Source of the DNA: Epithemia pelagica
Lineage: Eukaryota; Protista; Bacillariophyta
Assembly: GCA_946965045.2 (NCBI GenBank)
Contig: OX337230.1
Location: 2,666,001-2,730,000 of the forward strand
Length of the DNA stretch: 64,000 nucleotides
Direction: 5' to 3'
The position numbers were made by a program, and so were the translations under genes. Positions 1 to 57,489 of this stretch are shown piece after piece (the stretch's first letter is position 1; each line of letters opens with the position of its first letter). The notes beneath the pieces are model-generated. The model saw only the letters and a program-made list of their open reading frames with translations. It searched no databases and had not been told where the DNA came from.

Positions 1-690
1 AGCATACGCACTGAAGAGTCCACCGTAGCCTCACCAAACTTAAAAGTTTCTTAGAACACACCACCAAGGTCTCAAAGCCACAATTCTAGCCTGGTTCATT
101 CGATTTCCATGAAGTGGTGCACCATTCCCAACCCTGCCCATTGGCCAAAAACGAGCCCAAATCGTGCCCACTGAAAAAATGGTCCTACTTTAGCTACTTC
201 TATCTCTATAACCATGGCCCCTGGACAAGACCACCCATCAAGGGGACCGAAGGCATTGTCTGGAGATGCTAAATATCGAACACCATGGTCTGGGAGTCAA
301 TATTCGAGAAGTTATCCCCCGTTCCCAACCGTGCGATTTGGGCGGGCGCGCCACCCTAGTAGGCACTAGGATTAGTTATTCCTTAAATCTATGCGAACCT
401 CTGATTAATGTCGCTTTCTGCATCAGAATAGGTCATTCCGTTTCTAGACAACCATAGTTGGAATACCCCCATAGGATTAATTCATAAATATAACCAAGGT
501 TAAGGGTTCCTAGCTTAATAATATGGCCCGGAGGTTTTCACCTAGTTGCTTACGGCAGAAGTAACTTTGTAAGAAACCGAGTCTTTTTGCACTTCCCTGC
601 AGATCATCATGATTTTACCCAATTACCGCTTTAAATACTCATTCGTGTTCCGACCACTTCATCTCCCTTGGCTTCTTCTGCCCGTCCACC

Positions 691-845
691 AACAACGACT
701 TGATCGATCAGACGCAACATATTGACCTCGTCATGGGCCACTGTCTCGACCGGATCCTCCTCATCCACCACATCGTCACTCCGCTGGTATCACCCCAACG
801 ACCGTATATTGTTGAGCAAGTTTGACTGGGCCTCTGCATATCGAC
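691..845 (+). mobile_element. Tyrosine-recombinase (DIRS/Ngaro-like) retroelement RT fragment, frameshifted
   Basis: Manual translation gives LRWYHPNDRILLSKFDWASAYR, matching the RT fragment at 9425-9700 (HPTERILISKFDWASAYRR). Confidence 0.7.
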
Positions 846-1149
846 AGGAGATCGATTGCTGCGTGTTCCGCATGTGAGGCTTGGGTGTCCGCGGCTGTGT
901 AGGGAGGGCAACGCTTGCTGTAGCCAATTGTTATGGTGTATCCGCGACCTACAACTCCCAAACCAAATCCATCCTTTTCCGCTCTTCCATCCTACCAAAA
1001 ATCACCACTTGTTCACATCCGACATCCTTCTACTCCTCCGTCACCCATCCCACACACAAAACATCCCCGACCACTCCCTCAATGCTGAAGACTCCTCTAC
1101 ATAAAAAAGAAAGCATGCTATGAGCTACTTTGCTTTGACATGGAACATG

Positions 1150-1795
1150 AATGACAAGAAATGGTTCAAACTGCTTCTGCAGGACAGGGATACGTAAGCA
1201 CAGGTTAAACATGTTTGTGAGATCGAGTAAAAGGAGGGCTCGAGTTGGGGAGTGTGGTGGGAGTGGTGGTGGTGATGTATTTGCCAATCTGTGTTTGGGT
1301 CATGTGGACGGTGAAGTCGACTCCGCCACTTGTTTGGATTCGTATTGACCATGTTGGGTTAGGATTGGTTCGATGTGGTCGGTGGTTGCGGTAAGTGTGA
1401 TGGTGGCGGCAGTCCGTCGTAGTCCGGTGCCTATCCCGATTGGTCTCAGGTTGTTTAGTTTGTTGATGTCCTTGTGCAGGGCGAAGAAGTGGATCGAGGC
1501 GAGGTAGGGGCGGATAGGTGTGGGGATCGGGTTCTTGCTGAGGATGAGTTCGTATAGGGCTTTGAGCTTTGAGGGACAAGAAGTAAGGGTGGTCAGATTG
1601 GGGGTGGGAGGTGGAACTGTGGAGTCCCATTGCACGGTATACGTATATGGAATTGGCATAGGGTCCGGGTGCGGTGCCTTGGCTGAGTCGGTGTTGTACT
1701 TGTTCAAACGTGGAGTCGGATATGGAGTTGTGGAAGGTGGGTAGGTATTGTTGTTCTCGGGTTTGTCGTGGTGGGTCCAGTCGGGGTGGGAACAA
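1150..1795 (-). mobile_element. CRE-like non-LTR retrotransposon RT N-terminal part, frameshifted
   Basis: Ordered RT motifs across three frames: GTAPGPY; FALHKDINKLNNLRPIGIGTGLRR; GQY/IQTSGGVDF; TRALLLLDLTNMFN. Confidence 0.8.
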
Positions 1796-2016
1796 CTCGA
1801 ATGCGAGAAAAGAAAGATTCGTTCTTGATGGCAGTGAAGCAGTCTTGAGTCGTCATCAGTAGAGATCGTCGACGATGATCTTTGTGCACGACTGCTGAGG
1901 TGTGCAGCCGCAGATTCGTCATCATTGTATCTGGTTGGGACCAAAGGCGGCATGGAAGATCGAAGAATAGCCACTCGGTTTTCCCATTTGTTGTGTGGTT
2001 TATTGTTTTGTAGCTT

Positions 2017-2170
2017 CTAGTCCAACACATAGACTGGACAGCCGAATGGCTTCCAGTGTTTCTTGTTTGTGTTGACTGTCGTTTGTGAGAATAGCTGTAG
2101 TGGTGATTGTTTCAATTCATGTTGCATGTTTGGGCTCGCATTGATACAATCGTTTGCGTGTAGAAGTTGG
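2017..2170 (-). mobile_element. Ty1/copia integrase C-terminal fragment
   Basis: HANDCINASPN...SPLQLFSQTTVNTNKKHWKPFGCPVYVLD*; FGCPVYVL is a copia integrase motif. Confidence 0.8.
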
Positions 2171-2479
2171 GAATGACCATTGAGTGGGATTTTCCCAGGT
2201 CGTCTTCCCATTCCCAGTGGATTGTGCCCGTCCAGGGTGAGACAGTCTCCCAAACAGGGAACGGAATGCGACTGTCCGGCATAGATGGCGACCCACAACG
2301 TCGTCCCATCATGGCTTATGCCAATCCTTTCAACGGTCTGCCAATGTCTGTGGGATATCACTACGGTTCGGTGACTGAAGCAACACAACAACTGGCCAAC
2401 ACTGTATCGGTTATACACGACAATAATTTCAATCTATCTGCTGCGCAAAAGGAATGGTGGTCGGGAAATCACGAGAAAG

Positions 2480-2751
2480 GTCTTAAGGCAACGACAGTGC
2501 GAGGAATTGTAAATCCCACAGGTCATGGAAAGCCGAAAAACACGCGGCATGTCAACCTCGATGAGTTGGTGATTGAGAGGAAGTTGAACTGGAAGCAAGA
2601 CAGAACTAAGGTCCATATCTTGCCAAGTGTGTTCTCACCGACCGGCATGGTAGAAAGATGTTTGACTCCACAAGAACTCGCGTTGGCCTTGGATTTCCCG
2701 GCCGCATTAAGCAAACGAGCCACTGACACTGAGTTTTTCCGCATGAGTTAA
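2480..2751 (+). mobile_element. ORF fragment, probably from a YR retroelement, ending in a cytosine-methyltransferase motif-X-like segment
   Basis: LPSVFSPTGMVERCLTPQELALALDFP resembles the R-LT-xxE...FP pattern; assignment from recall, not searched. Confidence 0.4.
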
Positions 2752-2869
2752 AGCATCGTCCTTTTGTTGAGCACACAAAATGATCTACAGAGACACATTG
2801 TCCAGGATGGAGGTTGCCATCTTTGGTGACACCTCGCCGATCTTTGACAATGGTGGTCGTCGAACCGGG

Positions 2870-3110
2870 TTCAGTACGCCGTCTTTGCTTACCAAATGCC
2901 CACCCTGCAAATATCTGGGAAGTTTTTCTTCAAGTGAGGTATCTCTGATTTCGACAAAGCGTTCGATAACGTCAAAAACGTCGGGAAGGGAGCGGTGCTT
3001 GTTGTTGTAGGTCCCTCCCAACCAGCGGAAAATGTCCGCGTAGACGAAGTTTTGTCTACAGAGGGCGACCGAAAGGAGGTAGGCTTTTCGGTAATGAAGT
3101 GGGGCATCCG
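2870..3110 (-). mobile_element. YR retroelement RT-ORF N-terminal fragment
   Basis: DPDAPLHYRKAYLL...DIFRWLGGTYNNKHR resembles the R[YW]LGGxY...HR segment recalled upstream of RT in diatom YR elements. Confidence 0.55.
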
Positions 3111-3235
3111 GATCGACTTTTGGTGGTTGCCTACAAAGGGAAAGTGAGATTCCCGGGCAGCGTGTTACACGAGTATACCGCCAATGTGGTGGCTGAGAAC
3201 TTGTTTGCCCAAAAATCGACAGTGAAGGGAAACGC

Positions 3236-3700
3236 CACGTGATGATGAAAGAGATAATAGGGCACAGGAAAAACGGGGACGCGGTTAGTCGAGACGATGG
3301 GTTCACGTTATCTGCAAATGGGAACAAGCACCCGAAATGGACGACGAAAGGATGGGAGATAGCCGTCGAATGGGTGGATGGGAGCCAGGATTGGGTACCA
3401 CTCAAAGATATGAAGGAAGGATACGCGGTAGAGTTGGCGGAATACGCGGTCGCATTTCACTAGTGGGTACCGCAGGTACTAAACCACTTACGAAGAATCG
3501 TGAAGAAGGTGAAAAAGAAGTACTGGAGGACGACCAAGAAATACGGGATCCAGCTACCTCAACCTCACTCAGTTGAGGAAGCGTTAAGGATAGACGAGAT
3601 CACGGGGACTACCTACTGGAGGGACGCTATAGAAAAGGAACTTAAGGGCGTGAGTGTGGCATGGGAGGCCAGAGACGACCTCAACCTAGAAGAGGAGAAA
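3236..3700 (+). mobile_element. pol: CoDi-type copia pol fragment (chromo-like segment and pre-RT region), frameshifted
   Basis: KEIIGHR...TTKGWEIAVEWVDGSQDWVPLKDMKE...AEYAVA and KKYWRTTKKYGIQLP.SVEEALRID...YWRDAIEKE, collinear with the pol at 32864-34711. Confidence 0.9.
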
Positions 3701-3764
3701 GCGGGACATCGTAACAAGGGCCATCAAGTCTCACAAAGCGAGACTCAATTTTGATGGCTCGTGC

Positions 3765-3830
3765 ATGGAGAAAGGGCAAGACTATGATCAGACCACATAC
3801 GCACCAGTAGCCAACAGCAGAAGCATACTA
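3765..3830 (+). mobile_element. Copia RT start micro-fragment
   Basis: MEKGQDYDQTTYAPVAN resembles GxDYxETYAPV. Confidence 0.5.
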
Positions 3831-4239
3831 TGCCCCATTTCAACTTCGGAGGGAATGACTTGTCTGGGGGACAACGGGGAGCACACGTGCCCGACCCACG
3901 CGTGCATGACGAGTCAGTCGAGCCTCCTTTGGACTTCACCATTCTCCAGCAACACATTTTACTCGCAAGTATGCTGAGCCTTCTGATCATACTACCAACT
4001 ATCCTGTGGATTCTACCTAATCCACATTCGTTGGAAAATGCAAACACAGTGTTCAAGAACGGATTCGAATTACTATGGAAAGGAATTACACAATTATGGG
4101 GAGGGGGCTGCAATCTGACCTATGGATTCCTCACCATGGGGTGGGGACTGTTGATCCATCCCTCCTATGGGCGTTCTCTCAACGTGAAGCCGACGCTGAG
4201 ACAGTTGCCTTTCTTAATCGATTACTAAACTCTTTTCCT

Positions 4240-4610
4240 ATTACTCCTCACCTACATATGTTGATTCCAAACCGACATGGTCCCAGTGCGCGCCATCGCT
4301 CCGGAGCTCCGTCCTCCACCTTCCACAAGCACCCGCACGTTCGTGGGTGCCCGATATACTTCGACTCCACTGTCCGTCTTCACTTTTACCCGGGCGCGAG
4401 TCACTTTCATCACCACGCTTGGCTCAAACACGCGGCACGCAGTAAACGTCCTGCCGTCCGTCGTCTTGCTCGTTTCTTTCAGGCTTTACTCACGACTTCC
4501 CCTTTGCCCGTCCACCTGCAGGCGTCGCACAAACCAGGAGAGGATAATCACAACGCCGACCTCGTCCTGTCCAGACCCAGCAAAGCTCCCACCTGGGCAT
4601 CCGTTACAGG
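4240..4610 (+). mobile_element. YR retroelement RNase H fragment
   Basis: AWLKHAAR...LQASHKPGEDNHNADLVLSR fits the HxPGxxNxxADxLSR motif. Confidence 0.7.
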
Positions 4611-4759
4611 TCTGAAGAGGAAGCCGAAAAGGATGAATCTCCCAAGAAGAACTCCATTATGGAGGAGGAGGCGGTTTCCTCGGAAGACAAAAACGCTGAG
4701 GAACCGGCTTCACTCACCCCTGTCCCACAGCAAGAATGTGAGCCGGCAAAGCCAACGCA

Positions 4760-5025
4760 ACCCTCGAAACCGTGTAGATCACTTTCTTGTTTCCCTCCAT
4801 GGTGACGTATTGTTTGTACTAGTCGTTTATCTTGCAGAACACGTCCACTACTGGTCCTTCCAGTTTCATCAGGACGAAGTCTGGCATGAGGGCTTTTAGG
4901 TACGCCCCCGCGATATCGGCCGTTGCCACGTCGCGTCGCTCAAGGGCGTCGATTATGAGCGTGAACATCAAACCGTCGCTTGATAGTGCCGGTGACGCAA
5001 TCTCCCCTTTCTCGTACTTGTCTCT
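4760..5025 (-). mobile_element. Copia RT fragment with internal stop
   Basis: Manual translation IASPALSSDGLMFTLIIDALERRDVATADIAGAYLKALMPDFVLMKLEG...D*YKQYV. Confidence 0.85.
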
Positions 5026-5039
5026 TTGTGGCCTTCCAT

Positions 5040-5255
5040 CTTCACAGCTGATCCCGCTTCCCTAAGCAATCATCCTTCTCCCTTCCTCTCCTCCTTGATG
5101 GACCGTCGCTTCGCCATGTTCCCCCTCCCGGACTTCCCTCCCAAGGAGAACGATCGTTTCGAAGATGTTGTCAACCGCCTCTCCTCCATTCCTCCTACGG
5201 ACTGGTGCGATGCCTTTTCAACTTCCTACCACCTCGAGATCTCACGTGACACCTC
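5040..5255 (+). mobile_element. Unidentified ORF fragment, possibly YR element ORF1; paralogous to 31780-32035
   Basis: PTDWCDAFSTSYHLEISRDTSKW aligns with PVGWADAFCSDFHLALDSNPKLW on the minus strand near 32000. Confidence 0.35.
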
Positions 5256-5395
5256 GAAATGGGACACGAATGGGAGCAACCAACCCAGCACCAAAAGGAG
5301 GTCTTGGCCCTCCAGGCCGAGGTGCTCCATCTCAAGAAACAGTCCAACAAGAACAGCGCGGACAAAGCAAAAGCCAAGGATGGAGTACACAAGAA
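5253..5395 (+). mobile_element. Copia gag fragment
   Basis: LEMGHEWEQPTQHQKEVLALQAEVLHLKK resembles the W..P...Q..I.AL.AE gag segment of diatom copia elements. Confidence 0.5.
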
Positions 5396-5626
5396 ATTCA
5401 TCGCAGCCCAAAAATGTGGGTCCAACCTTTTATATGGATCTTTTGCTACTCAGCCTTAATGGGAGTTTTCCGACACTTCCTCAGCCATCATGGAATGTTT
5501 GATGAAAATGAAGGAGGCAGCCAATCTATTTAACTACTCTTTTCGATACGCAAATCATTACAAGTTTTATATCAAAGAACTTGGAATCAATTATTTGAAT
5601 TGGAAAAAAAATCATGTTGTTCACAG

Positions 5627-5644
5627 AACCCTAACCCTAACCCT
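5627..5644 (+). repeat. Interstitial telomere-like repeat (AACCCT)3
   Basis: Three perfect copies read directly. Confidence 0.85.
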
Positions 5645-5898
5645 CACACTGAATATGCAAGAACAATTTGCGATGCATCATATGAACATAAGATCCAGGT
5701 CAAACTGGTGAACCAAACACCGAAACGGAAGATTCATGTTCTAGACCAGTAGCACCGCGAATAAAAATACACTGCGAGTCCTCCCCCACAAGGGCAGACC
5801 ACGAAGCTTTCTTGACGGCATGCGATGCCACACTGCACTCCAAACGCATATAGATGCGATGTCCCGAACCAATGACTCCACGACACACATCCCCAAAA

Positions 5899-6455
5899 TC
5901 AGAGAGTCAGGTCAAAGCTGGACTGCAGATATTTCAATACACGGGTCAACTTTCGCTTATCATCAACGTCGGGGCTTGCAACTCTGGTACTGAGAAACGC
6001 CACGGCTGTCCGGATGTCGGGTCGACCGCGTTGCGCTAGGTAAGACAATTGCATGGTTCTGTGAAACTCCTCGGCCTCACTTGACGACAGTTTGGTGGCG
6101 TTGTCCCGTATCATGGTCAGGTGATTTGCTGCTGGGGACTGTGCCTTCCCTTGCATGGACTTTGGTAGATCATCCAGGATCGTCGCTAAATACAGACGCA
6201 TGTCCACTTCGAGGCCACCGTCCTTGCTGTAGTCCAAGTACATCCCGAAGTAGTCGTGACGCCGTCCCCGTGACACAGAGAGCTCACCAAGACACCCAAA
6301 CTCAGCCTTAAGATCCTCAATGATCTTGGTCAACACTTCTTCTTGGACGTGCGAAATCTTGAGATCATCAATGTGCCATGTAATGGTACATTGTGCTCCA
6401 TCTATCCATTTGTTTGCCACGCAAGCGTCATAAGGATTGATGACGAATCCCACAG
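5899..6455 (-). mobile_element. pol: Copia RT C-terminal fragment
   Basis: GFVINPYDACVANK...ITWHIDDLKISH (catalytic HIDD)...HDYFGMYLDY...RPDIRTAVAFLSTRV. Confidence 0.92.
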
Positions 6456-6589
6456 TAGGAACTTGGCAACCTTTGACCAACCGTCAAGATTTGTGTTACT
6501 CATTCCATCATAGACGGTGCATTGTCTAAGATTTATCGACAGATGTAGGACGACATAATGAGAATTTCCAGATGCCAATACAACAATCT

Positions 6590-6880
6590 TTGTATAGACC
6601 CATCTTCCGTCATTTCAACTCACGACAATGGGAACACAAACTCCCAAATTCCCAATGCCGGCGATGACGAAGATGCCAACCCCGCCGTCCACTACGGCAC
6701 AGCATTTCTACGGTTCCTCTGGTATATTTATAATTTGCGACTAGATCACCCTCAAGAAGACATCTTGTTGTCGGCGGATGATATCAGAGCGGCTTTTCGC
6801 CGCATAAATTATAATCCCACCGCTGCTACAGCCTTTGCTTGTGTTTTGGGGTGGTTTCTCATAATACCGGTGGGGATGAA
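6590..6880 (+). mobile_element. YR retroelement RT fragment
   Basis: NPAVHYGTAFLRFLWYIYNLRLDHPQEDILLSADDIRAAFRRINYNP...FLIIPVG. Confidence 0.75.
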
Positions 6881-6884
6881 GTGT

Positions 6885-7429
6885 TCGTAATGAAGGGTCT
6901 GGAGTACAACTCCATGGATCGTACGGTGTACGTGATCCGGTTGTGCGTTCATCCGAACGACTCGAAGCTTTACACTGCCAAGGTCAACATGACCGACGAT
7001 GACTTCAAGGAGAAGTCAGTGAATGTGACGGGGCCTTGGCGTCGCAGCTGGCACAAGGACAGCGACCAATTTCTTGAGATGGTCGATGAAGACTTCCACC
7101 AGGCTTGTCAGAAGGCACTCAAGAAGGCCGCGACAAAGAGCACCAGCTCCAACTATGGGAACAAGCACTGGGAATTGATCTTCCCCGACGGCGTTGTCCT
7201 CGACAACACCGTCTTTCGTCCAGGAAACAATACGTTGATTGCAAAGGAGAAGGCCCTGATGCATCAGGTGGCCAGAAAAGATGAAAAAGGCAAGGACATT
7301 GTCTTGTATGGAATGTTCTTGCACTGGTGGATTGCTGAGAAGAATGGAGCTGAAGAATTGGGTCACGACGCGGAGGAAGAAGAACTTGCTTCCCTTTTGA
7401 AGCGCAAGGCAAGGATCACGAACAAGTGA
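6885..7429 (+). CDS. 3' part of an unidentified protein gene, 5' end replaced by the RT fragment
   Basis: About 180 open codons of globular-looking sequence (KHWELIFPDGVVLDNTVF...WWIAEKNG), stop at 7429, AT-rich tail follows. Confidence 0.55.
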
Positions 7430-8221
7430 TCACATCATGAGAATTATGAGAGAATGAATGAACGAATTGTGATAGCACACTATAACAAGACTTAACTCGT
7501 GATTGAGAGAATCGAACAATAAGTAGAAATCATTGAACACATCCATTAATTGTGACTCCTTATAAGCATCACTTGGTTCGAAACCCAGAATTGTAGTGAT
7601 TTTGGAAACAACACCTTCTTGATTTCTTGTTTTTCGGAATGGATTTGTTCTTGACGACATGCGAGCTCCACAATGTGTAAGGTATTTTTGCCATAAATGA
7701 GATATGACCCAACCATACCAGTCCTTTGTTGATACAACTGCATCGGATACAATGGTCCACAGTGAAGGCACATACAGCAACATTATTGAAAGGATCCATA
7801 ATAAACGGTTTTTTCCTGGTTATGTTTCTGGGATCACAACGAACTTACGTCCAAACACACAACCTGTGGGGTGAGTTCCGACTAAAAGTCGTGGCCATGG
7901 TGCATCAAAGAATCGTTCTTCATAAACACTATTGTTGTCATTGTCAACCTGGGTGATGAATTATCTCAGAACTTGCTTCGACCCGGCGAACCAAGAGCAC
8001 ACTCTGTCGAGATCGTCTGAAATCTCCATACATAGCGATGCTATCTTCAAGGGTTATATACGTCGATCCAACCAAACATTGCTCTGCATTTTTCTATTGG
8101 TTCATTTTCTCGGTGCTCTATCATTGTTCTGTAGTCCTTGTATTGGTATTCAGAATCCAGCCCCTGATGCGTCTCCAAAGTAATATCTAACCTTGGCTGT
8201 ATCCTTGTCTGGACGCAAGTA

Positions 8222-8530
8222 TCACTCGAGAGGTTCTGCGGATTGGGTGAGGTCCTCCATTGCTTGGACGTCGAAGATCATTCGCTTCACTAGTTTCACT
8301 GGAGTGGGTGCATTCTCCATCGCTTCATTGTCCCTCAGACTAGCTGGGTCATTTGTTACCTTCCAGCCATCCTCATTTCCGCCTGGTCGCCAGATGTTGA
8401 TGGTGGCGTACACACCATTGAGATAGAGGAGGAGAGTCGGGTAGGCGCGTCCAACATGGTTGATGAAACCTGCAACTTGCTCTAGAGTTTTTGGATGCAC
8501 AGTTGCGACCCGTATCTTCTTCTGGAAAGT
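8222..8530 (-). mobile_element. YR retroelement RT-RNase H connection fragment
   Basis: KTLEQVAGFINHVGRAYPTLLLYLNGVYATINIWRPGGNEDGWK...APTPVKLVKRMIFDVQAMEDL. Confidence 0.7.
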
Positions 8531-8544
8531 GGAGTCTAGCCACG

Positions 8545-8775
8545 AGTCCGGCGACCGGACATGGCGACGATGGATGGACCACCTCCGACTCATCCACCAC
8601 GAATCAGACCCCTTTTTGGACCAAGTCCAAACCGAACACGGACGACTCACCATCGTCGCCACCTTCTTACAGCGACTCCGAGACGGCGATTGGGATCGAC
8701 GAACAAGTAGCGGACCTATTCGTGTAACGACTATCGACAAAGCCCTTGGCGAGCTGGCAGCGGCTTTCAGGCCTG
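8545..8775 (+). mobile_element. Tyrosine recombinase N-terminal fragment
   Basis: TWRRWMDHL...DPFLD...IVATFLQRLRDG...PIRVTTIDKALGELAAAF resembles the N-terminal domain of YR-element recombinases. Confidence 0.6.
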
Positions 8776-8905
8776 CGCAAAGGCATTCGAGAAGTCGGTC
8801 TGAATTGTCGTCTAGTTGAAGACGAGAGTCAGGAGCAAGACGAGACGGATTGTTGTCCATTGGACAACCGGCGCGTAAGTTTCGAAGAAGTCGACGCCAT
8901 GTGTT
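8765..8905 (-). mobile_element. Copia RT N-terminal micro-fragment with stop
   Basis: Manual translation GVDFFETYAPVVQWTTIRLVLLLTLVFN*TTIQTDFSNAFAQA. Confidence 0.85.
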
Positions 8906-8936
8906 TGTTGATCGCCTCTAACGCAGAGTCAAGGGT

Positions 8937-9424
8937 GGGGCAAGGGTGTGGCCAGCAAGGGTGCAAAAAGAATCTGCCAAGAGTCCAGGAAGAGTGGGGC
9001 AAGGGTGTGGCCAGCAAGGGTGCAAAAAGAATCTGCCAAGAGTCCAGGAAGAGTGGGGCAAGGGTGTGGCCAGCAAGGGTGCAAAAAGAATCTGCCAAAA
9101 TTGGGGCAAGGGTTTGGCCAGCAAGGGTGCAAAAAGAATCTGCCAAGAGTGGGGCAAGGGTGTGGCCAGCAAGGGTGCAAAAAGAATCTGCCAAGAGTCC
9201 GCCAAGAGTGGGGCCAGCAAGGGTGCAAAAAGAATCTGCCAAGAGTGGGGCAAGGGTGTGGCCAGCAAGGGTGCAAAAAGAATCTACCAAGAGTGGGGCA
9301 AGGGTGTGGCCAGCAAGGGTGCAAAAAGAATCTGCCAAGAGTCCAGGAAGAGTGGGGCAAGGGTGTGGCCAGCAAGGGTGCAAAAAGAATCTGCCAAGAG
9401 TCCGGCAAGAGTGGGGCAAGGGGT
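8937..9424. repeat. Minisatellite, 9 copies of a 48-bp core with an optional 11-bp extension (59-bp variant)
   Basis: Core GGGGCAAGGGTGTGGCCAGCAAGGGTGCAAAAAGAATCTGCCAAGAGT, with or without CCAGGAAGAGT; one copy is internally deleted. Confidence 0.97.
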
Positions 9425-9700
9425 GCATCCGAGTCAACGAAAATGTGTGGGCCGACACCACATTGGAGTGGCGACTGACAAATGTCAGGAGTCCAATCTG
9501 CAAAATCGGCAAGGTCGTTGCACAAGTCGGTGCCAATTTCCGAAACTATGGAAAACTCGTCGAAGGTTGAGGTGCGTGAACTCGTTGGATGGATCAATGG
9601 TGATGTTTCTTGCAGCTACTTCACCATCGCCGTGGATCCGTCGGTATGCCGATGCCCAATCAAATTTTGAGATCAAGATGCGCTCGGTTGGGTGGAGCAT
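9425..9700 (-). mobile_element. YR retroelement RT fragment, frameshifted
   Basis: HPTERILISKFDWASAYRRIHGDGEVAA...HLNLR then FSIVSEIGTDLCNDL...WTP...SPLQ...DAPLA. Confidence 0.8.
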
Positions 9701-10364
9701 ACACGGTTGATTGTTATCCTTCTTACTGCTTTCCGTCTTTTTGGGTTGGTCTTTACTTCTTTGCCTCTCGCTTCTTTGTTACTCTCAAGATCCCTTGGTG
9801 GCGTTTTACATGGTCTTACGGTCGTCTCTCTTGTCGGTTTTCCACGTCTCGCTTATACGGTTGCTTCTTTTGGCTTTGGTTTCTCTTTAACGGGTTGTTT
9901 GAATCTACGTTGATTGCTGGTTGTCACGCTGTCGGATTGTCCAACGCTGCTCCCCCTCTTCTTCTTCACCTACAGAACCTCGATGCTGATTCTCTTTTAT
10001 CGACCAAGTTTCCTCCTAGCGGTTTTGATTCTCGTCTTGGATTGACTGATCATCTCATTTCGTTGTCTCCCACTTCGTGTTCAGCTCTACATCATGGCTT
10101 CTTTTCGTTTGCTTCAAGTACAGATCCGCTCCGTCTTCCTTTCATCTCTTCGCGTCACTGGGGCGAGAATGGCAAACGCAAAATCAAGCGCCCTTTTGAA
10201 GCTCTTTACCGCTCTTACTTGCATGGCCTGGACGATGACAGCCTCACCAATTTGTTTCTTATGCAGTGTTTGACACCCGTAGACAACTCAAGTTTTTGGG
10301 ATCCTATACTTTGGACCCATCTGTCCGACACTTTTGGCTTCGACACTTCTGAAGATGACACTCC

Positions 10365-11342
10365 TCAATTCACCAAAACCAGGTGGCAACGTCTATACTC
10401 CTGACTAAAACTATTTTCCTGCGTATCTTCAAATCCATCATCTACGTGTGAATCGTAAGTTGCTGCGTCGTCATCCGAAGCATCCTCGCAAAAGAGACTC
10501 GGGCTTTTGTGCTGCGGCTCAAATGCACGACTTCCAGGCATGAACTGCACAGTCTTCTCCGCCTCACGTCGATTGTGTGCGTGCTTTTCACCTGGCGTCA
10601 TGTATTGCCAATCCACATTGGATTTTGCAACAGTCTCCGCTTCAGCGATCGAATCGTCCTCCTACTTCAAGGGAGTGCTGGTTACCATCATTCCATCCTG
10701 TCCTGAAATCAATACAAGGTCAGTACAAGCTCATTTCAATTGCAAAGAGTCCACGTTCAACTTGCCATTGTTGTTGACTGTTTTGTCAATTCTGGGATTG
10801 TGGTTGCTCTCGGTTTGCCGGAGCGTTTCCACGATCTCTCCAATGGAGACTTTCTTACCCGTGCCTTGATAGTTTCTTCCAATCATAAGTGTTGTCGCTC
10901 CATTGGCATCACCAAGGATGAGATGCCACTGCGTTGCTTCCTTGAGCGCAGTCTCGAACCTCTTCTCTGCGTCACTGCTGGCCGCCGGCACCAATACCAC
11001 AGCGTCGTTCATTCCTCCTCCTGCCAGCTTCTTGTCAACCCCGCTGTTGTCCGGAGTCTCCCCAACCACCTCTGGAGACTGGGGTGGGGGGAGATCCTCG
11101 GGATTTGTCTTCTTCGTCCGGCGTTTTTTCCTGGCATTCTTCTTTCCGGAGCTCTTCTTCGGAGGGAGCTTCGTTGCCGATGCCCTTCCTCCTCGAGAAG
11201 GCTTCCATGGAGTAACAGCAGCTTCTTCCTGGATGTCCTCCAGGAAGATTGCCGTTTTCGTGCGGGTACGACTTGGGTAGCGATGGTTGCTGTTGCTGCT
11301 CATCCTTTGTTTTTTGTGAGACACACTCACAGAACTCGCCAT
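10365..11342 (-). pseudogene. Unidentified gene with basic low-complexity N-terminus, disrupted by stops
   Basis: ATG at 11342 in an A/C-rich context (CAACACACAGCATGG); about 200 open codons, then in-frame stops before the 10365-10616 ORF. Confidence 0.4.
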
Positions 11343-11582
11343 GCTGTGTGTTGGTTGGATGGCATGTGGGAATGTGCATGCTCGGACAAGACCAAACTCG
11401 ATCAACCTACTTAGAGCAACGGATAGACCAACGGAAAGCGGTGCGCGCCCAAGATCCGACCAACCCGTGTGGCTCCCACATTTTGGATGCATCCGGAAAC
11501 GATACGCGAACAAGAAACAAAAGTGATTTGAATCTAACAATCAACTCGGCGTGGAGTAAACAGTTTTCCACAATCGACAAGC

Positions 11583-12089
11583 ATGGAGGAGATAGACTTC
11601 TATTTCAACAAGGACCATGACGGCCCTGAAAATGACAAAAGTCGGTGCAACTTTCGGACAAGTTTCTACGCAGATAGGGTGAATGTTCTCGTGTTGGACA
11701 TTGTTGATGACAAGGAAGAACGAAATGGAAGAAATGTTGCGGACCGTGGGCATGCTCTCCTCCAACGCGAGACAAGCACCGACTATCTTCGGTTGGCTTT
11801 CTACAAAAGGGAAGCGCGGTCTGAGTTCGCTGACCCGCTGCTCGTGCTGCCAGTTGGGTTCATTGTGAAGACCGTGATGAAGGAAGTTCTTTCACCCACG
11901 GACTCCAGCAAGAAGAAGGGCCGCATTCAATTCTTTACACGCTGCATAATTGATACCAAGAGCAGCATGGACCCAATGGTCCTGACCATCTATTTGAGCC
12001 TCTTCCACATGAACGAGCTCAAGACTGCTCTGGGCTACATGACGACGAAGTTCCCCAAACAGAACCTATTTTTCACAGCAGATGCCTAA
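11583..12089 (+). CDS. Hypothetical protein, 168 aa, no recognised domain
   Basis: Uninterrupted ATG-to-TAA ORF with globular composition, followed by an AT-rich tail. Confidence 0.55.
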   Translation: MEEIDFYFNKDHDGPENDKSRCNFRTSFYADRVNVLVLDIVDDKEERNGRNVADRGHALLQRETSTDYLRLAFYKREARSEFADPLLVLPVGFIVKTVMKEVLSPTDSSKKKGRIQFFTRCIIDTKSSMDPMVLTIYLSLFHMNELKTALGYMTTKFPKQNLFFTADA

Positions 12090-12681
12090 TAGAACCTACT
12101 TAGTCGATTAGTAACAGCAGTTCTAGTGTTTGAGGCCATGAATGCCATCGTATTTGCCCAAACATCGGGCCGTCCCATTGTCATGGTTGCTGCGGATTTT
12201 TCACTGTGGAGTTTTGTGTACGAGTTTTTTCTTGGTACAGTCTTGTAAACTAATATACTCATGCACTACGAAATGTGAGCCAGCTTGTAAAGGTTCTTGT
12301 ATGTCTGTCAAAAGGTGGATGCTTGGCAACGCGGGGGCATTTCAAGAAGAAGGATTGCGCTTCATGTTGCAAATGTGGCACCTCCACAAAAAAGATGACT
12401 TCTCCTTCAATGAGTTCGGGGACCAGAGTGTCCTACGAATGGTACACCCCAGTCCAACCCCACCATCAACCCTTGCTGGGATCAGATCAATGAATACCTG
12501 CCAGCAAACAACAACAGAACAAGTGATACCTTTGGAATGGTACGAGTCGCTGATGTCCGGAGGGAGAAAAGGTTGGATTTGCTTGTGGATGGCTTCTTCG
12601 AGGTGGTAGAAGCCTTGCTTGTTCTTGATGGCAAGGGCGGGGATGCCGCCGACTATGCCCATGGCTTTGGCGTGGGGGTTG

Positions 12682-13377
12682 TTACATGCCGGAAGGTATA
12701 GTACGAGTTGTTGGGCCCTTGGGCTGGTTCGGCGACGCATATTTGAAAGGGCGTACTAGGATGATTTGGTCTCCATCGACCGTGGTAGAGATGGAGGTTG
12801 AATCGTTCAAGACGGAGGGTGGACGAGGAGAAGGTGCAATGGAAGAGATTCCAGGGAAGCTGTGACGGGGAAGAGGATGATTTGGAATGGGAGTACCATC
12901 GATGTGCCATCCCATCTTCCACTCTTCGTCCAGGACACGTTCGTAGGCTTCATCCAAGGTGAGGTACGGTTCTTTCCACTTGCGGGCATGAATCATGTGT
13001 TGAGCACGTTGGAATCTCATGCCGTCACGTCTTGCATTTTCTGCTTTGCCTCTGAGACGATCTTGTTTCAATTGAGCAAGGTCTTGGAGAAGATGACGAG
13101 GTAACTCGGGAGGCAAAGGGTCAGTACGCCAGTGGGGACCAACCGGTCGAGGGATTGCTGCCGCTTCTACAGGTGAGATGAGGGGCAGTTGATTCACTGG
13201 TGCGACGGGTTGGTGCTCAGGGATAGCGTCCCCTTCAATTCGAAGAGCAGAGTTGAAGCGAACACCACGACGAGGTGAGTTCTTGGCTGCGGGCTTTTTA
13301 TCTTGATCATCTTGATTGTCGTTAAAGGTGTCCTCATGAGCCTCGGTGTCTTTATTTTTGCAGATAGGTGACGTCAA
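12682..13377 (-). CDS. Unidentified ORF downstream of gag, probably mobile-element derived
   Basis: 231 open codons, Pro/Arg-rich, no recognised motif. Confidence 0.3.
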   Translation of the reverse strand: MTSPICKNKDTEAHEDTFNDNQDDQDKKPAAKNSPRRGVRFNSALRIEGDAIPEHQPVAPVNQLPLISPVEAAAIPRPVGPHWRTDPLPPELPRHLLQDLAQLKQDRLRGKAENARRDGMRFQRAQHMIHARKWKEPYLTLDEAYERVLDEEWKMGWHIDGTPIPNHPLPRHSFPGISSIAPSPRPPSVLNDSTSISTTVDGDQIILVRPFKYASPNQPKGPTTRTIPSGM

Positions 13378-13526
13378 AACGACCGTTGTTGGAGTTTTGT
13401 TGTTGTTTGTGGATGAGTCTGATCCAGGTTGGGCGGATCATGAAAGACGTCCATCGATAAGGCTTTGCATTAGGGCAGATGGAGTGGCTTCCGGGGCATC
13501 AGGATAGCCGTACGGAGCTGGGATAT

Positions 13527-13702
13527 CGGAGAAGAAGGACGTGTAGGCATGGTTGACAATGTTGTCCTCGTCTTCTGTGACGGTGGTAGAGTCATCGTCA
13601 CTGTCTTGGTAATTCGGAGAAGAAGGACGTGTAGGCATGGTTGACAATGTTGTCCTCGTCTTCTGTGACGGTGGTAGAGTCATCGTCACTGTCTTGGTAA
13701 TT
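13527..13702. repeat. Perfect 88-bp tandem duplication
   Basis: CGGAGAAGAAGGACGTG...GGTAATT starts at 13527 and at 13615. Confidence 0.95.
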
Positions 13703-13748
13703 CCCAGCATCAAACATGTCTGAGCTTGAGTATCCATAGGAGTACTCA

Positions 13749-14957
13749 TCATCTTCGCTTGTGATACTTAGAATTGGCTTCATCTGTTACGTGGGTGTGT
13801 AGAAGCTTGTTTGTAGTCATGTGTTTGTCAGCCACAGACTTGTCAAGGAACCTGATGTGATCCACTGCTTCTTGCACCTTCTGCTTAAGGGTTAGAAGAG
13901 CAAACTTAGGTGTCTCAGGCCATTGTGCGAGAATGATGTTCTGTAGGAAGGTAGCAGTGAGTCCGTGGTCGTATAGTCCAGTCGCGGTAAGAGATCGTGC
14001 TTTGATCGCGAAGTCTTTAGTCATGAGTGTGATGTCATGGCCGGGGTAGTTCTGAGGAACGAGCGACCGCATTTCTCCTTTGACAATCTCCCGGGAGTCG
14101 CCTGTCAAGATTCGCACATGAGCCATAAAAAGCTCAGGGAAAGATTGTGCATCTCTACTTTGTTCTTCGACTTCACGACGGAACTGATGCTCAAGACAAT
14201 CCAGTAAGTAGTCCCTCGCACAAGCGTCATTGCTCTTGTCGTACTTATCGTAAAGGAGCAATTGAGCAGCCATCAACTCACGAACTTTTTGATTCGTGAA
14301 CTTGGGATGTTCCGTAACAATATGGAGCATTTCCGAAGAGTTGGAAGGATTGGCCAAGTATGCAATGGTGTCCATTCCATGCATTTCAAGGTGTTTCACA
14401 AGATCGTCTTGGAGTCGAGCAAAGTCTCCGGTCTTTTTATCGTACTCTTCAGTCAATCCAGTTACACGTTCTGTGTATTTCTTATCGGTGTGTGTCCGAA
14501 TTTGTAAACCACGCAATGGTGTTGTTTCGGCATTATCGTCTAACCCTGCCCATTTTGGTTTGGGTTTTCCACCGGTCCAGGGAACCCATTCGTTATATCG
14601 GCTTTGGATTCGCCCTCCCATTCTGGGCTTGTCGGGCATGAAGACAGCGGTAGTTGTTGGTGACCCTTCTTCGTCACTCGTGGTGTCGTCGGATGTGTTG
14701 CCGGAGGAATCTGAGTTGCTCTTTTCTTCTTCTCCTTCTTCTGGACAAGGATTCGTCTCAACAATCAACAATGGTCGAGGTCGTACAGGTGGTTGTTGTC
14801 CTTGCGCTTGATCCAACAATCCCCTTTCAGTTGTAGCCTCTTGTAAGTCGCCTCCCGGTGCGTTGTTTCGATTGGCTTCTGCTTCGTCTGCTTCAGTTGC
14901 TGAAATCCAGTCAAAGCTACCAGGTCCAGAGGAGGTAGGCGAGATTTTGTCCGCCGT
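13749..14957 (-). mobile_element. gag: CoDi-type copia gag, 3'-truncated
   Basis: WVPWTGGKP...HLEMHGMDTIAYL...YDKYDKSNDACARDYLL; the frame stays open upstream of the listed TTG to 14963, with ACG-GCG-GAC at 14957 as a probable decayed start. Confidence 0.8.
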
Positions 14958-15109
14958 GATGACTCAACAATTCAATCAAGGAGTGGTTGAACGTCGTGCA
15001 CCACCAAAGGAAGGCTCGACTTGACAATCAATCAGAGTCTGCCTTTACCGTCGATCTATCGCAGAGGGATGCGTAGATAGTCAATCTTCTTAATTGGGCG
15101 AAGATAACC

Positions 15110-15417
15110 ACTTAAGATATTCAGATCTTGTCTTACTGGGAGATAAACTAGGTAACGAGGTTAGATGTAGTTTTCTCTCTTTGTAGCTCTAGTTGAAACA
15201 CGACGATGGGGCCCTCACCTTCGTAGTCCAACTAGATGCTCTTACAGGAAGGTTGCTTGTCACTTTCTTGTTTTATAAAAGAGTGAGTTTAATCTTGAGT
15301 GTAATGGTTTTGTTGATGATCATCCAGGAAGGATTTCCTGGAAGTTCATCTTCAAGGATCGTTCGTCATTGATCTAGATGATGTGGCCACTAGGCCACTT
15401 CATCGTCATCTATGACA
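15110..15417 (-). mobile_element. Probable 5' LTR of the gag-bearing element
   Basis: Minus strand begins TGTCATAG at 15417 and is followed near 15110 by a PBS-like TGGTTATC; there is no second LTR to confirm the ends. Confidence 0.4.
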
Positions 15418-15651
15418 TGTGTTATGTTTACTATGTCGTGCATCCTTTATTGTGTTGGCTTATGATATGCATTGGATATTGTGGTTCTAAGTCCATCGTC
15501 TGGTAGACTTATGACTTAAAGTTGTTTTCTCTAAATGTGGCTGAGGGGCGTGGGTTCGGTCGACTGGCGACACTTAACCCCTCGGGACTCGTGCCACTCT
15601 TCAACGGACATACAATGTTTATTGCCCTTTATATTCATCCTTTATGTACGT

Positions 15652-15853
15652 CAGAATCATTGTTGTTGAACATGACACATGACTTCTTTGCTAGCAAGTA
15701 CAGAACAAGTAGTAGTCCTACTGATGTTTGGAGGAAGTTGATGAAGCCATTGCAATATAAACAGAATCATTGTTGTTGAACATTACACATGACTTCTTTG
15801 CTAGCTAGTACAGAACAAGTAGTACTTCTACTGATGTTTGGAGGAAGTTGATG
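15652..15853. repeat. 110-bp period direct repeat, with a third partial copy at 20797-20882
   Basis: CAGAATCATTGTTGTTGAACA... at 15652 and 15762. Confidence 0.92.
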
Positions 15854-15998: not shown

Positions 15999-16014
15999 CA
16001 CACACACACACACA
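15999..16014. repeat. (CA)8 microsatellite
   Basis: Read directly. Confidence 0.9.
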
Positions 16015-16368
16015 GCCACACACTCATACACATGACATAACGTACTGTGCATTTTTCACTTTCTAAGTTGTTGTACATTTCCAATCATCACTGAATCATC
16101 TTCTTTTTCCCTTTTTCCCAGTGTCGCACGGCTGGACCTGTATACCCCTTCCGACGTGGCCCATCATAGGGCGGCGGCAGAGGGTATGCGGGGACTGTCA
16201 ACTTCCTTGTCAGACCTCTGACGACGTTCTTCAATGCATGTTTCATGACATATGGTTTCTGTTTCGATCCGGCTGTATGAACTAACCCTGCCACATGACA
16301 TATCACCCTCAGTGCATTCGGCCTGGGGCTCCTTACACAATGCACCGATTGCACTTGGGCGGCCTCAG

Positions 16369-16948
16369 ATGACACATATCACAAATATCACATCCCAGAT
16401 TATTATCATCCCATTCTTCTCATTTGAAATACAAGTCGACAAAGCTCATTACACATATCACACTGTTTGAACTGACCAAATCACACAATACCAACCACAA
16501 AACACTGATGGCAGACCACCATCTGATAATCCATCATATTAGCTACATGACACATATCACAAATATCACATCCCAGATTGATATCATACCATTCTTCTCA
16601 TTCAAAACACTAGTCGACAAAGCTCATAACACACATCACACTGTTCGAACTGACCAAATCATACGATACGAACCACAGAACACTGATGGCAGACCACCAT
16701 CTGATAATCCATCATATTAGCTACATGACACATATCACAAATATCACATCCCAGATTGATATCATACCATTCTTCTCATTCAAAACACTAGTCGACAAAG
16801 CTCATAACACACATCACACTGTTCGAACTGACCAAATCATACGATACGAACCACAGAACACTGAGGGCAGACCACCATCTGATAATCCATCAGATAAGCT
16901 ACATGACTCATATCACAAATATCACATCCCAGATTGATATCATACCAT
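16369..16948. repeat. 178-bp tandem repeat, about 3.3 copies
   Basis: Units start at 16369, 16547, 16725 and 16903 (ATGAC[A/T]CATATCACAAATATCACATCCCAGATT). Confidence 0.97.
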
Positions 16949-17229
16949 AACTAGTAGTAAGCTCACAGTCAATATCATTACCATATCATCACGTCTTTAG
17001 TGTCCTGACTATCCCTACGATAGGACCCTTGGGTTTCCTCTGTTCTCTGACCCATGGAGAACCTAGGTATCAGTTGGTAATCGATTGTGGCTTTCCTAGA
17101 GCGTGTACTGACGGATTCTATCAGATTAACAGTGTCACCTGTCGTATTTCCCATGTTTAGTGGCCCCCAATACTCCTGTCCGTCGGATCTACAATTCTTT
17201 TCAGCAGAGTGGTGACCCAACACAGCAGA

Positions 17230-17470
17230 TTACCGTCCAGTCTGGATGTAACATTGCTGAGCAAAAAGAACATCAAGATTATGTTCAGGAATTTTTCTTG
17301 TGAGAGGATGATGAGGAGTCGCCGCGTGTCGAGTTCCCACCCAAGGACTTGCATGACTTGGCTTGGGCTGCCTATTTTATCTTCTGCGAGAATGTTCGTA
17401 CGCTTGATTGGTTCCTCTGTTGGGTGGTTTGGTCGGATGAACAAGTGCAAGACTAAGGGGACCACTTCAG
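17230..17470 (-). mobile_element. YR retroelement RT fragment
   Basis: VPLVLHLFIRP...EPIKRTNILAEDKI..SPSQVMQVLGWELDTRRLLIILSQEK. Confidence 0.75.
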
Positions 17471-19229
17471 AGGCTCTCCCGACTGTCTTCTCACTACACT
17501 TATCAACGCTCTTCTTGGATGTCTTTAGAAGATTGTCTTCTTCCATTGCTTTCCCTTTGAGTCGTTGGTCTTTTCAACAAACATTTTTATATCACATTGT
17601 TTCTTACTACACTTCGATGGGATTTCAATGATACCAACAATTTTCTGACGACAGAGACCTGTTTTCTGAAACAGATTTTTTCTTTTTACTGTTCACTACA
17701 ATATCATACACATTCGAAATACGATCACAAGTCTTTGCAGAAGACTAGTTGATGGTCCTTGTCCCATGGAGACAAATGGACTCCAATCCAATTCTGACAC
17801 TTGCTCTATTCTTATTTGGCAATAACTGAAAGCATCATGCAGGTTCAAAACAAGCAATGCCATGGACAATGGTTGGTATGCTTACGGATAGTGGACCAAT
17901 TTCTTGTGGTCAGTGGCACATTGAAATAAAGGATTGTTCATGGATTGAATTCTAATTACTATGGAGGTGCTGCTTAGAGCTAGGTAACATTCATGGGGAC
18001 ATAGATGGTCTTTTTCCTGGTATGATGCACAGTCACCTTTGAGGGCACTAGCTAGCTCTAGTCTAGCTCTACTAGGAGTAGCTATCACCAGTGGGTCACA
18101 TCAAATAATCTGCGATTGCATTAGTTCTTCCTCCTGATACTTGGTGTTGTGCAAGATCACAAAATAAAAGTTTCTTACGTGTGTGGTGTTTGGTGTTGTC
18201 TTCGCTGTGGAGAGAGAAAGACAGAGTGCGAGAATAAGATCTGAGGTGACTGGTGGTCTGTCCATTGTCTGTGTCTGGCCCAGTCCCTATGTTCATCCAA
18301 ATCCCGAGACCATCCATCTCCTCGCACTATATTTCCCATTTTAGTACTATAATACCAATAGTCTCTGTGCTTTCCCATTTTGAATTTCCGATATCATGAT
18401 CGGTTCTGAACTTGTGATTGGCTTGTTTGTTGCCAATGTCTCTTCTCATTGGCCCCTTTCTTGGCACCTCCATCGAACCTACTCTCTTCTGGATACAAAA
18501 TCCATCCAGCCACCATAACTTTTGCTGCACCGACCTGTTTAAGTCAATGCCACAGATTGAAGGAATAGAGGATGTGGATGTGGGAGAATCACGCGTACAA
18601 CTTGATCAAGTTCCCATTATTTTTTGAAACAGGCCCATTGGTTCAGTCTTTGGGGTTGCGACCACATTGTAACACGTCTATTTTGTGGCCCAGTTTTTTT
18701 CCCAAACAAGGGACACAGTCAACCAGGTCTTCAGTTGAAGTGCCAGGAGCCTATTGATTGACAATTGTTTGTGGGAGCTGAAAAGGTGCAGTAATAGGTT
18801 CCTGGCAGCAGTTGGTTCACCCCTCAACTTTGCTTGTGTTTGGGTTGTCGCAAGGAGCATACTTGTCTTCTTGAACCATCAGGCCCAACTATAGTAACAC
18901 TTGTTGTACCAAAGTGGGGCGGTACCACCATAAGCCAGACCTTTGACAACATCAGTCACATTGAGCCCCTTGAAATGAAAAACCATTGTTTTGGTATAGA
19001 CAAGCAGTTGGATGCTACGAACAGCCCACCTTGCCAACCATCACACCCTCACACAAGATCTCAAAGTCTTGTTCGACTTGATTTTGAGAATTGCATTATC
19101 CCAAATTCATTCATGACAGCTGAACAAGAGTTTTCCAATGGGAATCATCTCAGGAGGGTGAAAGATGTCATGACAATTTTGCCTCGGCCATTTCAGATAC
19201 CCCTGGCTTTCTCATCGACCAAGAGTTGA

Positions 19230-20018
19230 GTGGGTATTATGTTTCTTTCTGATGATTTTGTCTCTGAAATGAATGCAGGACAAATGGGGAGTCTTCATCT
19301 TCTTCATCCCTCCTATGAGAGCAATTGTGTAGACTCAGTTGCTTTCCTTCAAAATGAAGAATTGGCCATGGATCAGACAAGTCTTCCATGCCTTCCTCTG
19401 TTGTATTTGTTCTCAAAGTTGTCTGATGAGATTTCTCCTGTGAGAGTATCCACTCAATTCAAAGAAGCACAAAAGGACAAATCTTTGGATGAATTGCAAA
19501 GATGTAGAGTTTATCCCCCTGACAAGTCACAGAAAAAACCAGAAGCACATTCCCGATCACATGTGTGTCGGCAAGAATCCAACGTGAAGAAGTCAAAAGC
19601 TAAGAAGAAAATTAACCACCCCAAGTGCAAGTCTCCAAAGGTGAGTGAAAAAGCTTCACCCAGGCCTGTTGGTAGCATACGAATTGGCGTAAATGATGCT
19701 GTCTTTGGTCGTGGTGGAGAAGCGAACAAGCTAAGGAAGGTATTAAAGCTGTTTGGGTCTTTAATTGACAAGCACAGCATTTCCTACGGTTCTTCAGACA
19801 ATGTTGAAAAAGAATGAATCGTCATGGAAAATATTCATGATGTAGAACAAGCAGGGGGGCGATTTTTTGTTTTACAGAAGGGAGATTTGGTTCAAACATG
19901 CAACTCTCAGCTGATCCAAACTAAGATCCGACAAAAGCTCAGAGACAAGAATATACTACCAAGGAAGAAGAGATGCTACAGTCGCAAAAAGGACACCATG
20001 AAGGTATTTGAGCTCTAA
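19230..20018 (+). pseudogene. DUF6824-domain protein pseudogene with one in-frame stop
   Basis: NDAVFGRGG...FGSLIDKH...Y...KE*IV...VEQAGGRFF...KIRQKLRD; ORFs 19230-19817 and 19824-20018 share a frame across TGA 19815-19817. Confidence 0.8.
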
Positions 20019-30070: not shown

Positions 30071-30269
30071 ACTGTTTCCAGTGTCCTGGTTTGATCGCTG
30101 GGATCCTGGCCGTCGTCTGTTGGGACCGTTGGCGGTTCTTCATTTTGTTGTTGCGCATTCTCTCTGTAGTCCTCTTCGGGTGTGTTGGCTAGATTCTTGG
30201 AGTCGAGGTCTTTTTCTCCTTTGTTTTGGTGGTCCCTCCGGTCCTTCCTCTGCCTCTGGCGTACAATGA

Positions 30270-57485: not shown

Positions 57486-57489
57486 ATCT

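Follow-up and report, generated by a model that had tools for sequence, protein, structure and literature searches.

A mosaic of short transposon fragments in the diatom Epithemia pelagica, consistent with end-joining capture of loose DNA and deletion

Structure and decay of the heap

The left part of a 64-kb stretch of Epithemia pelagica DNA (hereafter the window; contig OX337230.1, positions 2,666,001 to 2,730,000, corresponding to C3:2666001-2730000) contains a heap of short fragments of unrelated transposons, which we interpret, with a probability of roughly 0.55, as a non-functional structure that arose from end-joining repair with capture of short DNA fragments, together with deletions. 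Comparison of the window DNA with the 60.5 Mb assembly of its own genome (23 contigs), and local BLAST at the DNA and protein levels against 26 loci fetched around the best matches (L001 to L026), resolve positions 650-10400 into at least 29 separate pieces of 40 to 660 bp, with a median of ∼210 bp. Throughout, C-numbers denote contigs or chromosomes of this assembly, L-numbers the compared loci of the same genome, and plain positions those of the window. The matched pieces cover ∼83% of the interval, with E-values from 1e-20 to 1e-280, and ∼17% is without a match. An earlier reading made from the letters of this stretch alone (the sequence-only reading) had described a patchwork of about 17 pieces; the patchwork is real, and the count was an underestimate. 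The setting is a gene-poor transposon island of the chromosome, and the whole 64-kb window consists of transposon debris.

Each piece is an internal part of a different element, with 66-96% nucleotide identity to its parent. The match breaks off abruptly at the ends of the piece, where the parent runs on for kilobases on both sides, and none of the parental flanks (up to 5 kb each side) is present in the window. Most of the parents whose open reading frame (ORF) is long or classified are large, nearly intact elements. As the sequence-only reading had stated, no long terminal repeat (LTR) pairs or target duplications are found within 376-10394; element termini are missing there too, and the sole LTR fragment lies at 15200-15295. 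The only direct repeat within 1-12400 is a minisatellite of 48/59-bp units (8930-9422, ∼9 copies), and inverted repeats are absent from the same interval. The mixed orientation reported earlier is equally evident, with ∼10 pieces in plus and ∼12 in minus coding sense.

The pieces abut directly. At the eight junctions where the parents are known on both sides (1790/1793, 4418/4420, 4611-4614, 4774-4776, 5266-5267, 5900-5903, 6878-6879 and 7527-7529), the two matches are separated by a gap of 0-2 bp or overlap by 2-4 bp, and between 4252 and 5396 six pieces follow one another without a spacer. The alignment of each piece to its full-length relatives, which had been proposed from the sequence, gives internal breakpoints, the identity range above and microhomology of a few bases at most. 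As in filler DNA, the pieces are short and internal, lack termini and target duplications, and meet at junctions that are blunt or share a few bases. An exact-match scan of metagenome contigs for the junction at 7527-7529 returned no match.

Two pieces stand apart from ordinary multi-copy elements. The piece at 1793-1908 is a copy (91% identity to L015:1921-2036) of unique host intergenic DNA on C17 and is not a transposon; the donor lies 38 bp from an alpha/beta-hydrolase ORF (Hydrolase_4, E 3.5e-54), within a 4-kb locus that is otherwise unique in the genome. Since it is unique host DNA from another chromosome, this piece cannot have arrived by transposition. The piece at 6869-7529 (plus strand) comprises the end of an orphan 415-residue ORF and 110 bp downstream of it (93% nucleotide and 95% amino acid identity to L008), from a C13 locus without a further copy in the genome; no relatives of the orphan protein were found, and its neighbours are a distant SET-like ORF and a Harbinger-type transposase gene. 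The non-mobile donor of 1793-1908 is intact at its home locus, as is the donor of 6869-7529, whose nature is uncertain. Both pieces fall within the size range of the transposon pieces. The retroelement-only composition assumed in the sequence-only reading is thus incorrect, and capture of complementary DNA (cDNA) alone would be insufficient to account for the heap. Within the C17 donor locus, a ∼55-bp motif (L015:2098-2156, C17:1478497-1478555) occurs at no fewer than 38 places in the genome with 92-100% identity.

Decay of the pieces is modest. The ratio of observed to expected CpG is 0.83 in the heap, compared with 0.86-1.09 in intact elements and 0.43-0.52 in the rest of the window. The codons aligned to parents (∼2350) contain 10 in-frame stops and about six frameshifts, several frames of 180-400 codons are still open, and the best identities cluster at 91-96%, with none above 96.4%. 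The stop codons suggest a neutral change of ∼3%, with a wide error, to be set against ∼30 junctions in 10 kb. Elements elsewhere in the genome with 2-3 stops remain unbroken over 3-5 kb; because similarly decayed elements are whole, the shredding is local and does not reflect a uniform genome-wide rate. By these sequence measures, the region is heavily rearranged and only moderately decayed, and the earlier impression of DNA that has kept its CpGs and is fragmented but not old holds. Methylation-driven decay was considered and left no clear sign, the CpG loss relative to parents being only weakly asymmetric (69 versus 49 sites). Two other blocks of the window (16000-28000 and 48000-60000) have CpG ratios of 0.33-0.6 at a GC content of 0.40-0.44, against 0.75-1.2 in GC-richer transposon blocks; they may be older debris or differently methylated DNA.

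The heap is not a singular locus. The same architecture is present in three other regions, where pieces of 90-590 bp from unrelated repeats, with 69-96% identity to copies elsewhere, meet at junctions whose sharpest examples overlap by 0-5 bp. One of these mosaics lies in the window itself at 28.3-30.8 kb (28359-30788) and is more diverged; its short pieces, at least six in number, come from copia, non-LTR and DIRS-like families. The others are at C10:1941300-1945299 (11 pieces in 4 kb) and C4:1143600-1147599. For some pieces, the best match lies in a different heap, in some cases elsewhere in the C3 island.

Proposed capture by end joining and the alternatives

In the interpretation favored here, breaks in the region would be repaired by end joining, and the repair would ligate in short pieces of any DNA at hand. 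The donor DNA would be mostly retroelement, either free cDNA or copies of chromosomal elements, with some ordinary host DNA, and deletions inside resident elements would contribute as well. Most pieces would have been short on arrival, not whittled from full insertions, and may have arrived piece by piece or several per event. The pathway of repair and the kind of donor molecule are what we infer from the arrangement. Capture is a more economical explanation than decay, as it accounts for the absent termini, for the host-derived piece and for so many junctions at so little decay. The capture of fragments proposed in the sequence-only reading is partly supported by the internal pieces, direct junctions and absent termini, and is widened by the host piece beyond retroelements.

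Several known systems resemble this arrangement in part. In yeast, end joining takes up stretches of Ty cDNA and mitochondrial DNA of ∼45-300 bp, and ∼12% of the insertions contain 2-4 fragments (PMC11372161). The yeast insertions share with the heap the short internal fragments without element ends, the direct junctions, the joining of several fragments and the mixed donors; however, they hold 1-4 fragments, compared with ∼30 here, and the pieces of the heap reach 660 bp. A closer relative provides a second precedent: transgene islands of the diatom Phaeodactylum tricornutum are shuffled concatenations of many fragments in sense and antisense orientation at one site (PMC7290003). Those islands consist of bombarded plasmid DNA with repeated copies of the same fragments, whereas the donors here are endogenous and every piece is different. 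Complex numts and nupts (nuclear insertions of mitochondrial and plastid DNA) are natural multi-fragment structures in which unrelated organelle fragments were joined by non-homologous end joining (PMC6215612); unlike them, the heap has no organelle piece that could be seen. Fragment capture also has a precedent in mouse zygotes (PMC4516963).

Several observations weigh against this interpretation. Deletion inside resident elements clearly also contributed: three candidate collinear same-strand series were found, one of them only possible, which indicates that part of the structure comes from resident elements whose interior was lost or replaced. The first is a copia remnant (1966-2160/2160-2249) that has lost part of its interior at base 2160; the second, possible series links the copia pieces at 2236-2454 and 3144-3827, with foreign pieces between them; the third links the 5' part of a giant-copia-like element at 15.6-12.8 kb with a reverse transcriptase (RT) fragment at 8.93-8.77 kb, with ∼3.9 kb of other pieces between. 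The sequence-only reading had stated that no piece reappears on the far side of its neighbor, which these candidate series call into question; most pieces are without a collinear partner. The piece lengths follow a simple exponential, which would also be expected from random deletion, and the junction features do not separate capture from deletion. Finally, the age estimate is based on 10 stop codons, only one piece (1793-1908) is securely host-derived, and the C13 donor of 6869-7529 may itself be part of a rare element.

These same observations carry the most serious alternative, which is nevertheless unlikely: a graveyard of nested insertions, in which ∼30 full-length elements inserted into one another and each was cut by deletion to a few hundred bases, without any capture. 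The three collinear series do resemble resident elements with altered interiors, position 12290 is a true element end, and the exponential piece lengths and the debris that fills the entire 64 kb are in keeping with such a history. The few collinear remnants also fit nested LTR clusters of plants that were eroded by illegitimate recombination, with their truncated elements and microhomology at deletion junctions. In plants, such clusters retain LTRs and solo LTRs as well as target duplications and split host elements, features that are almost absent here; solo LTRs and target duplications are lacking altogether in the heap. Moreover, ∼30 insertions and at least 60 deletions would be needed within ∼3% neutral divergence, while similarly aged elements elsewhere are whole, and nested insertion offers no route for the 116-bp copy of unique C17 host DNA.

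A further alternative is one catastrophic event: the shattering and random rejoining of a local cluster of elements, or the single-step integration of free fragments that had already been ligated into a concatemer. The diatom transgene islands described above (PMC7290003) are a precedent for it. Pieces of the same family (the L018, L002 and L020 types) occur in permuted or inverted order, and do so at matching divergence: the three L018-type pieces have 73-76% identity, and two L002-type pieces, separated by ∼660 bp in the parent, are 240 bp apart and inverted in the window. The narrow cluster of best identities also points to one event, and a single age fits the stop counts, in an equal-age test of low power. 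The identities of the pieces as a whole, however, span the full range of 66-96%, and AT-rich unmatched spacers divide the heap into several blocks. In addition, the two L020-type pieces (652-847 and 9415-9694) overlap in parent coordinates and are 73% identical over 55 nucleotides, which shows that they derive from different copies. Taken together, an origin in one event appears improbable.

An archive selected for function is a much weaker candidate. Transposon fragments of many families would be transcribed there and would feed small RNAs that silence those families, in the manner of a cluster of PIWI-interacting RNAs (piRNAs). The heap does sample many families in a small space, and, like piRNA clusters such as flamenco of Drosophila, it packs fragments from many transposon families densely into a gene-poor region. 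Clusters of the flamenco type have a strong antisense bias and a defined transcription, whereas the heap has balanced strands (∼10 sense and ∼12 antisense pieces), includes non-transposon pieces and has scattered counterparts in several places. Hairpin-forming inverted repeats are missing, the Rfam search returned no match in the heap, and the weak asymmetry of CpG loss gives no support either. The divergence of many pieces from any living copy is 20-34%, which would make them poor silencing guides. In Phaeodactylum, small RNAs of 25-30 nucleotides cover methylated transposons in general (PMC4247016), and a passive output of this kind is probable here. A chimera of assembly or reads, which the sequence-only reading had held equally possible, is excluded in practice, since each piece is 3.6-34% divergent from every further copy in the assembly, where a chimera would be near-identical to its sources, the 100-600 bp pieces are far below long-read length, and the same architecture recurs at several loci.

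Two further candidates were dropped. A cargo array of the Helitron or Pack type was rejected, the array being single-copy as a unit, and telomere-repeat-primed junctions were set aside, the only CCCTAA run being single, short and located inside an unmatched spacer (5627-5645). This 12-base exact run of the telomere-type repeat is improbable by chance in 64 kb.

If capture was the main builder, the heaps show how the diatom nucleus takes in loose DNA, which bears on the many foreign genes of diatoms and on transgenes that integrate as shuffled islands. It would also be a warning for annotation, as short transposon or gene fragments in this genome would often be repair patches and not decayed insertions or new mobile elements. 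It is conceivable, if highly speculative, that the diatom regularly builds such heaps by multi-fragment capture of retroelement cDNA and stray host or foreign DNA, as a natural counterpart of the transgene islands, and that the heaps then template small RNAs and methylation and form a heritable record of active elements. As a single locus, the heap is ordinary debris with no sign of function.

Family composition of the pieces

The heap contains pieces from copia elements, from a DIRS-like group that bears an RT, from a non-LTR element with a zinc finger and from several unclassified repeats. A Pfam scan of the window's own ORFs and fragments returned no match, the fragments being too short for Pfam thresholds, and classes were instead taken from homologous parents with RVT_2 or RT motifs. 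Intact copia elements with open frames of 1400-2900 codons are numerous in the genome, as are RVT_1-type elements. The family labels of the sequence-only reading are supported for copia, through the RVT_2 parents, and for the RT of its tyrosine-recombinase (DIRS-like) group, through motifs A and C; the recombinase and the label ‘CRE-like’ found no confirmation in Pfam and PDB sequence searches.

The copia parents L003, L006, L007 and L011 carry RVT_2, window fragments align to all four, and homology to polyproteins with RVT_2 and the integrase-associated domains gag_pre-integrs and SH3_retrovirus was found via these parents. The pieces sample the N-terminal (gag-side), integrase-region, linker and RT parts. 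From left to right, the remnant at 1966-2249 (minus strand) joins residues 610-674 to residues 181-210 of the 1431-residue RVT_2 polyprotein of L006 across the deletion described above. The integrase-region fragment at 2233-2454 (plus) has its best DNA match in another scrap heap (86% to L017:1732-1828) and is 41% identical to residues 1545-1617 of the giant copia, and the piece at 2711-2908 (minus) comes from the integrase region of the giant copia itself (89% nucleotide identity to C8:630311 and five more copies; residues 1666-1725, 85%). The piece at 3144-3827 (plus; 79% nucleotide identity to L003:4673-5216, residues 105-303, then L006 residues 952-995) leads from the linker into the beginning of the RT and contains one frameshift and one stop. 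The piece at 3865-4168 (plus), probably gag/protease, comes from upstream of the integrase region (71% to L023:1871-2174, within an ORF of at least 1333 residues).

Further to the right, 4774-5055 (minus) is a copia RT fragment of a distant family with one stop (L007 residues 1039-1133, 47% amino acid identity), and 5266-5396 (plus) belongs to the ORF, probably gag, upstream of the copia polyprotein in the L006 family (95% to L006:4894-5024; 89% to at least 10 copies). The RT fragment at 5902-6451 (minus) retains an open frame (79% nucleotide and 90% amino acid identity to L007 residues 1162-1345). Another at 8755-8928 (minus) has two stops (L011 residues 1242-1299, 50%; second ORF of the giant copia, residues 372-420, 51%) and possibly belongs to the same old giant-copia-like element as 12811-15582. 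The last copia piece, 9703-10359 (plus), is the N-terminal, gag-side part of a polyprotein whose frame is still open (77% nucleotide and 69% amino acid identity to L011 residues 63-281). A young giant copia of ∼9.7 kb is present at C8:626605-636339 (L025 and L026). Its 734-bp LTRs share 99.7% identity, and its two ORFs encode 1961 and 824 residues.

The DIRS-like group (L005, L010, L018 and L020 types) is defined by RT motif A (a block around D..A[YF]) and motif C (Y/F-LDD), which lie ∼110 residues apart in L020, L010 and L005. A language-model search (the protein atlas) suggests RT/RNase H for the DIRS-like ORF, and the overlapping ORF, a candidate for the tyrosine recombinase, had no Pfam or PDB sequence match. 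Two pieces are RT fragments of the L020 type: 652-847 (plus) covers the motif A region (ORF residues 120-181, 79-87% amino acid and 80% nucleotide identity, with motifs A and C in the parents) and 9415-9694 (minus) corresponds to residues 163-265 (71%). The L018 type accounts for 2959-3171 (minus; ORF residues 158-228, 73% amino acid and 81% nucleotide identity), 4420-4614 (plus; 3' region, 76% to C17:1177720 and 73% to at least 12 copies) and 6585-6878 (plus; residues 325-422, 74% amino acid identity, and 74% nucleotide identity to C17:1176274). The piece at 5046-5267 (plus) belongs to an upstream ORF and has a single match (89% nucleotide identity to L005:4899-5120), and 8487-8784 (plus) lies in a region of two overlapping ORFs (84% nucleotide identity to L010:4881-5149), for one of which the atlas result above was obtained.

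The zinc-finger non-LTR element is represented by two pieces of the L002 type. The first, 908-1006 (plus), comes from a downstream ORF (L002 ORF 2376-4490, residues 134-165), and the second, 1204-1795 (minus), from the ORF just upstream of and into the RT domain, with one frameshift (77% nucleotide identity to L002:4710-5286, residues 271-450). In the parent, reading through one stop gives RVT_1 a score of 40 bits; taken separately, its two halves score weakly, as does the N-terminal C2H2 finger, and a restriction-like endonuclease was not identified in this element.

Among the unclassified pieces, 1080-1191 is a low-copy fragment (86% to C10:1881746 and C10:1841071), 4252-4418 has its best match in another scrap heap (74% to L024:1924-2093), and 4611-4776 is a multi-copy repeat of the L004 family (96% to at least six copies). 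The piece at 5685-5903 (minus) derives from a family of ORFs of ∼750 residues (77% nucleotide identity to L019, residues 27-99), with 15 relatives, none of which has a Pfam domain. The piece at 7526-8166 (minus) derives from an element with a 1403-residue ORF and has two frameshifts and one stop (92% nucleotide identity to L009 and C1:919223). Searches of PDB sequences, the protein atlas and word-based protein searches gave no family for the L009 ORF, the L008 orphan or the L019 family. A 292-codon open frame at 4021-4896 (plus) runs across four unrelated pieces and their junctions and has no Pfam match; it is probably a chance joining of open frames.

Spacers, borders and surroundings

Two AT-rich spacers interrupt the matched sequence on the left. 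The first, 376-651 (GC 0.39), is possibly native; only its first 41 bases match, as part of a 53-bp stretch at 366-416 that is 90% identical to DNA 2.5 kb upstream. The second, 5397-5684 (GC 0.37), is unmatched and contains ∼2.5 units of the CCCTAA repeat mentioned above. The left border of the heap is the right end of a ∼1-kb unclassified repeat (1-375; 93-97% to L001:4110-5102), which begins upstream of the window (L014:9397-10000).

On the right, the mosaic extends past 10400 to ∼12.8 kb. Its youngest and largest piece, 10395-12290, is a truncated 1.9-kb end portion of a larger, unclassified element with a SET-domain ORF (97.5% to L012; 76% to L013 and at least 11 more copies), and ends at the true element end noted above. 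In L012 (3933-9999) and L013 (1-6150), this large multi-copy element consists of a ∼900-residue ORF, the SET-domain ORF and the 1.9-kb terminal part, of which the window has only the last. Two further short fragments occupy 12340-12723 (12340-12548, 77% to C11:1196761; 12547-12723, 80% to C7:1735051). The right border is formed by a 2.8-kb 5' part of an old giant-copia-like element (12811-15582, minus; 64-79% nucleotide identity to C10:1826830-1830458 and to giant copia copies, residues 12-403 and 798-944), which includes the LTR fragment and a 404-codon frame that is still open. A comparison of the window with C10:1.83-1.84 Mb as a paralogous or empty site was dropped, the two being copies of the same giant-copia-like element. 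Paired matches offset by ∼40.9 kb in the repeat-rich region C10:1826830-1891486 indicate a segmental duplication of ∼41 kb.

High-copy repeats common to the window and to positions 11-48 kb upstream suggest that the island is more than 100 kb long. At 32067-32400 lies a 334-bp repeat with at least 35 copies (94-97% identity), of which three are found on the same chromosome, 11-48 kb upstream. Tandem repeats are present at 16369-16948 (178-bp units, 3.3 copies), 13526-13703 (88 bp, 2.0 copies) and 15652-15853 (110 bp, 1.8 copies).

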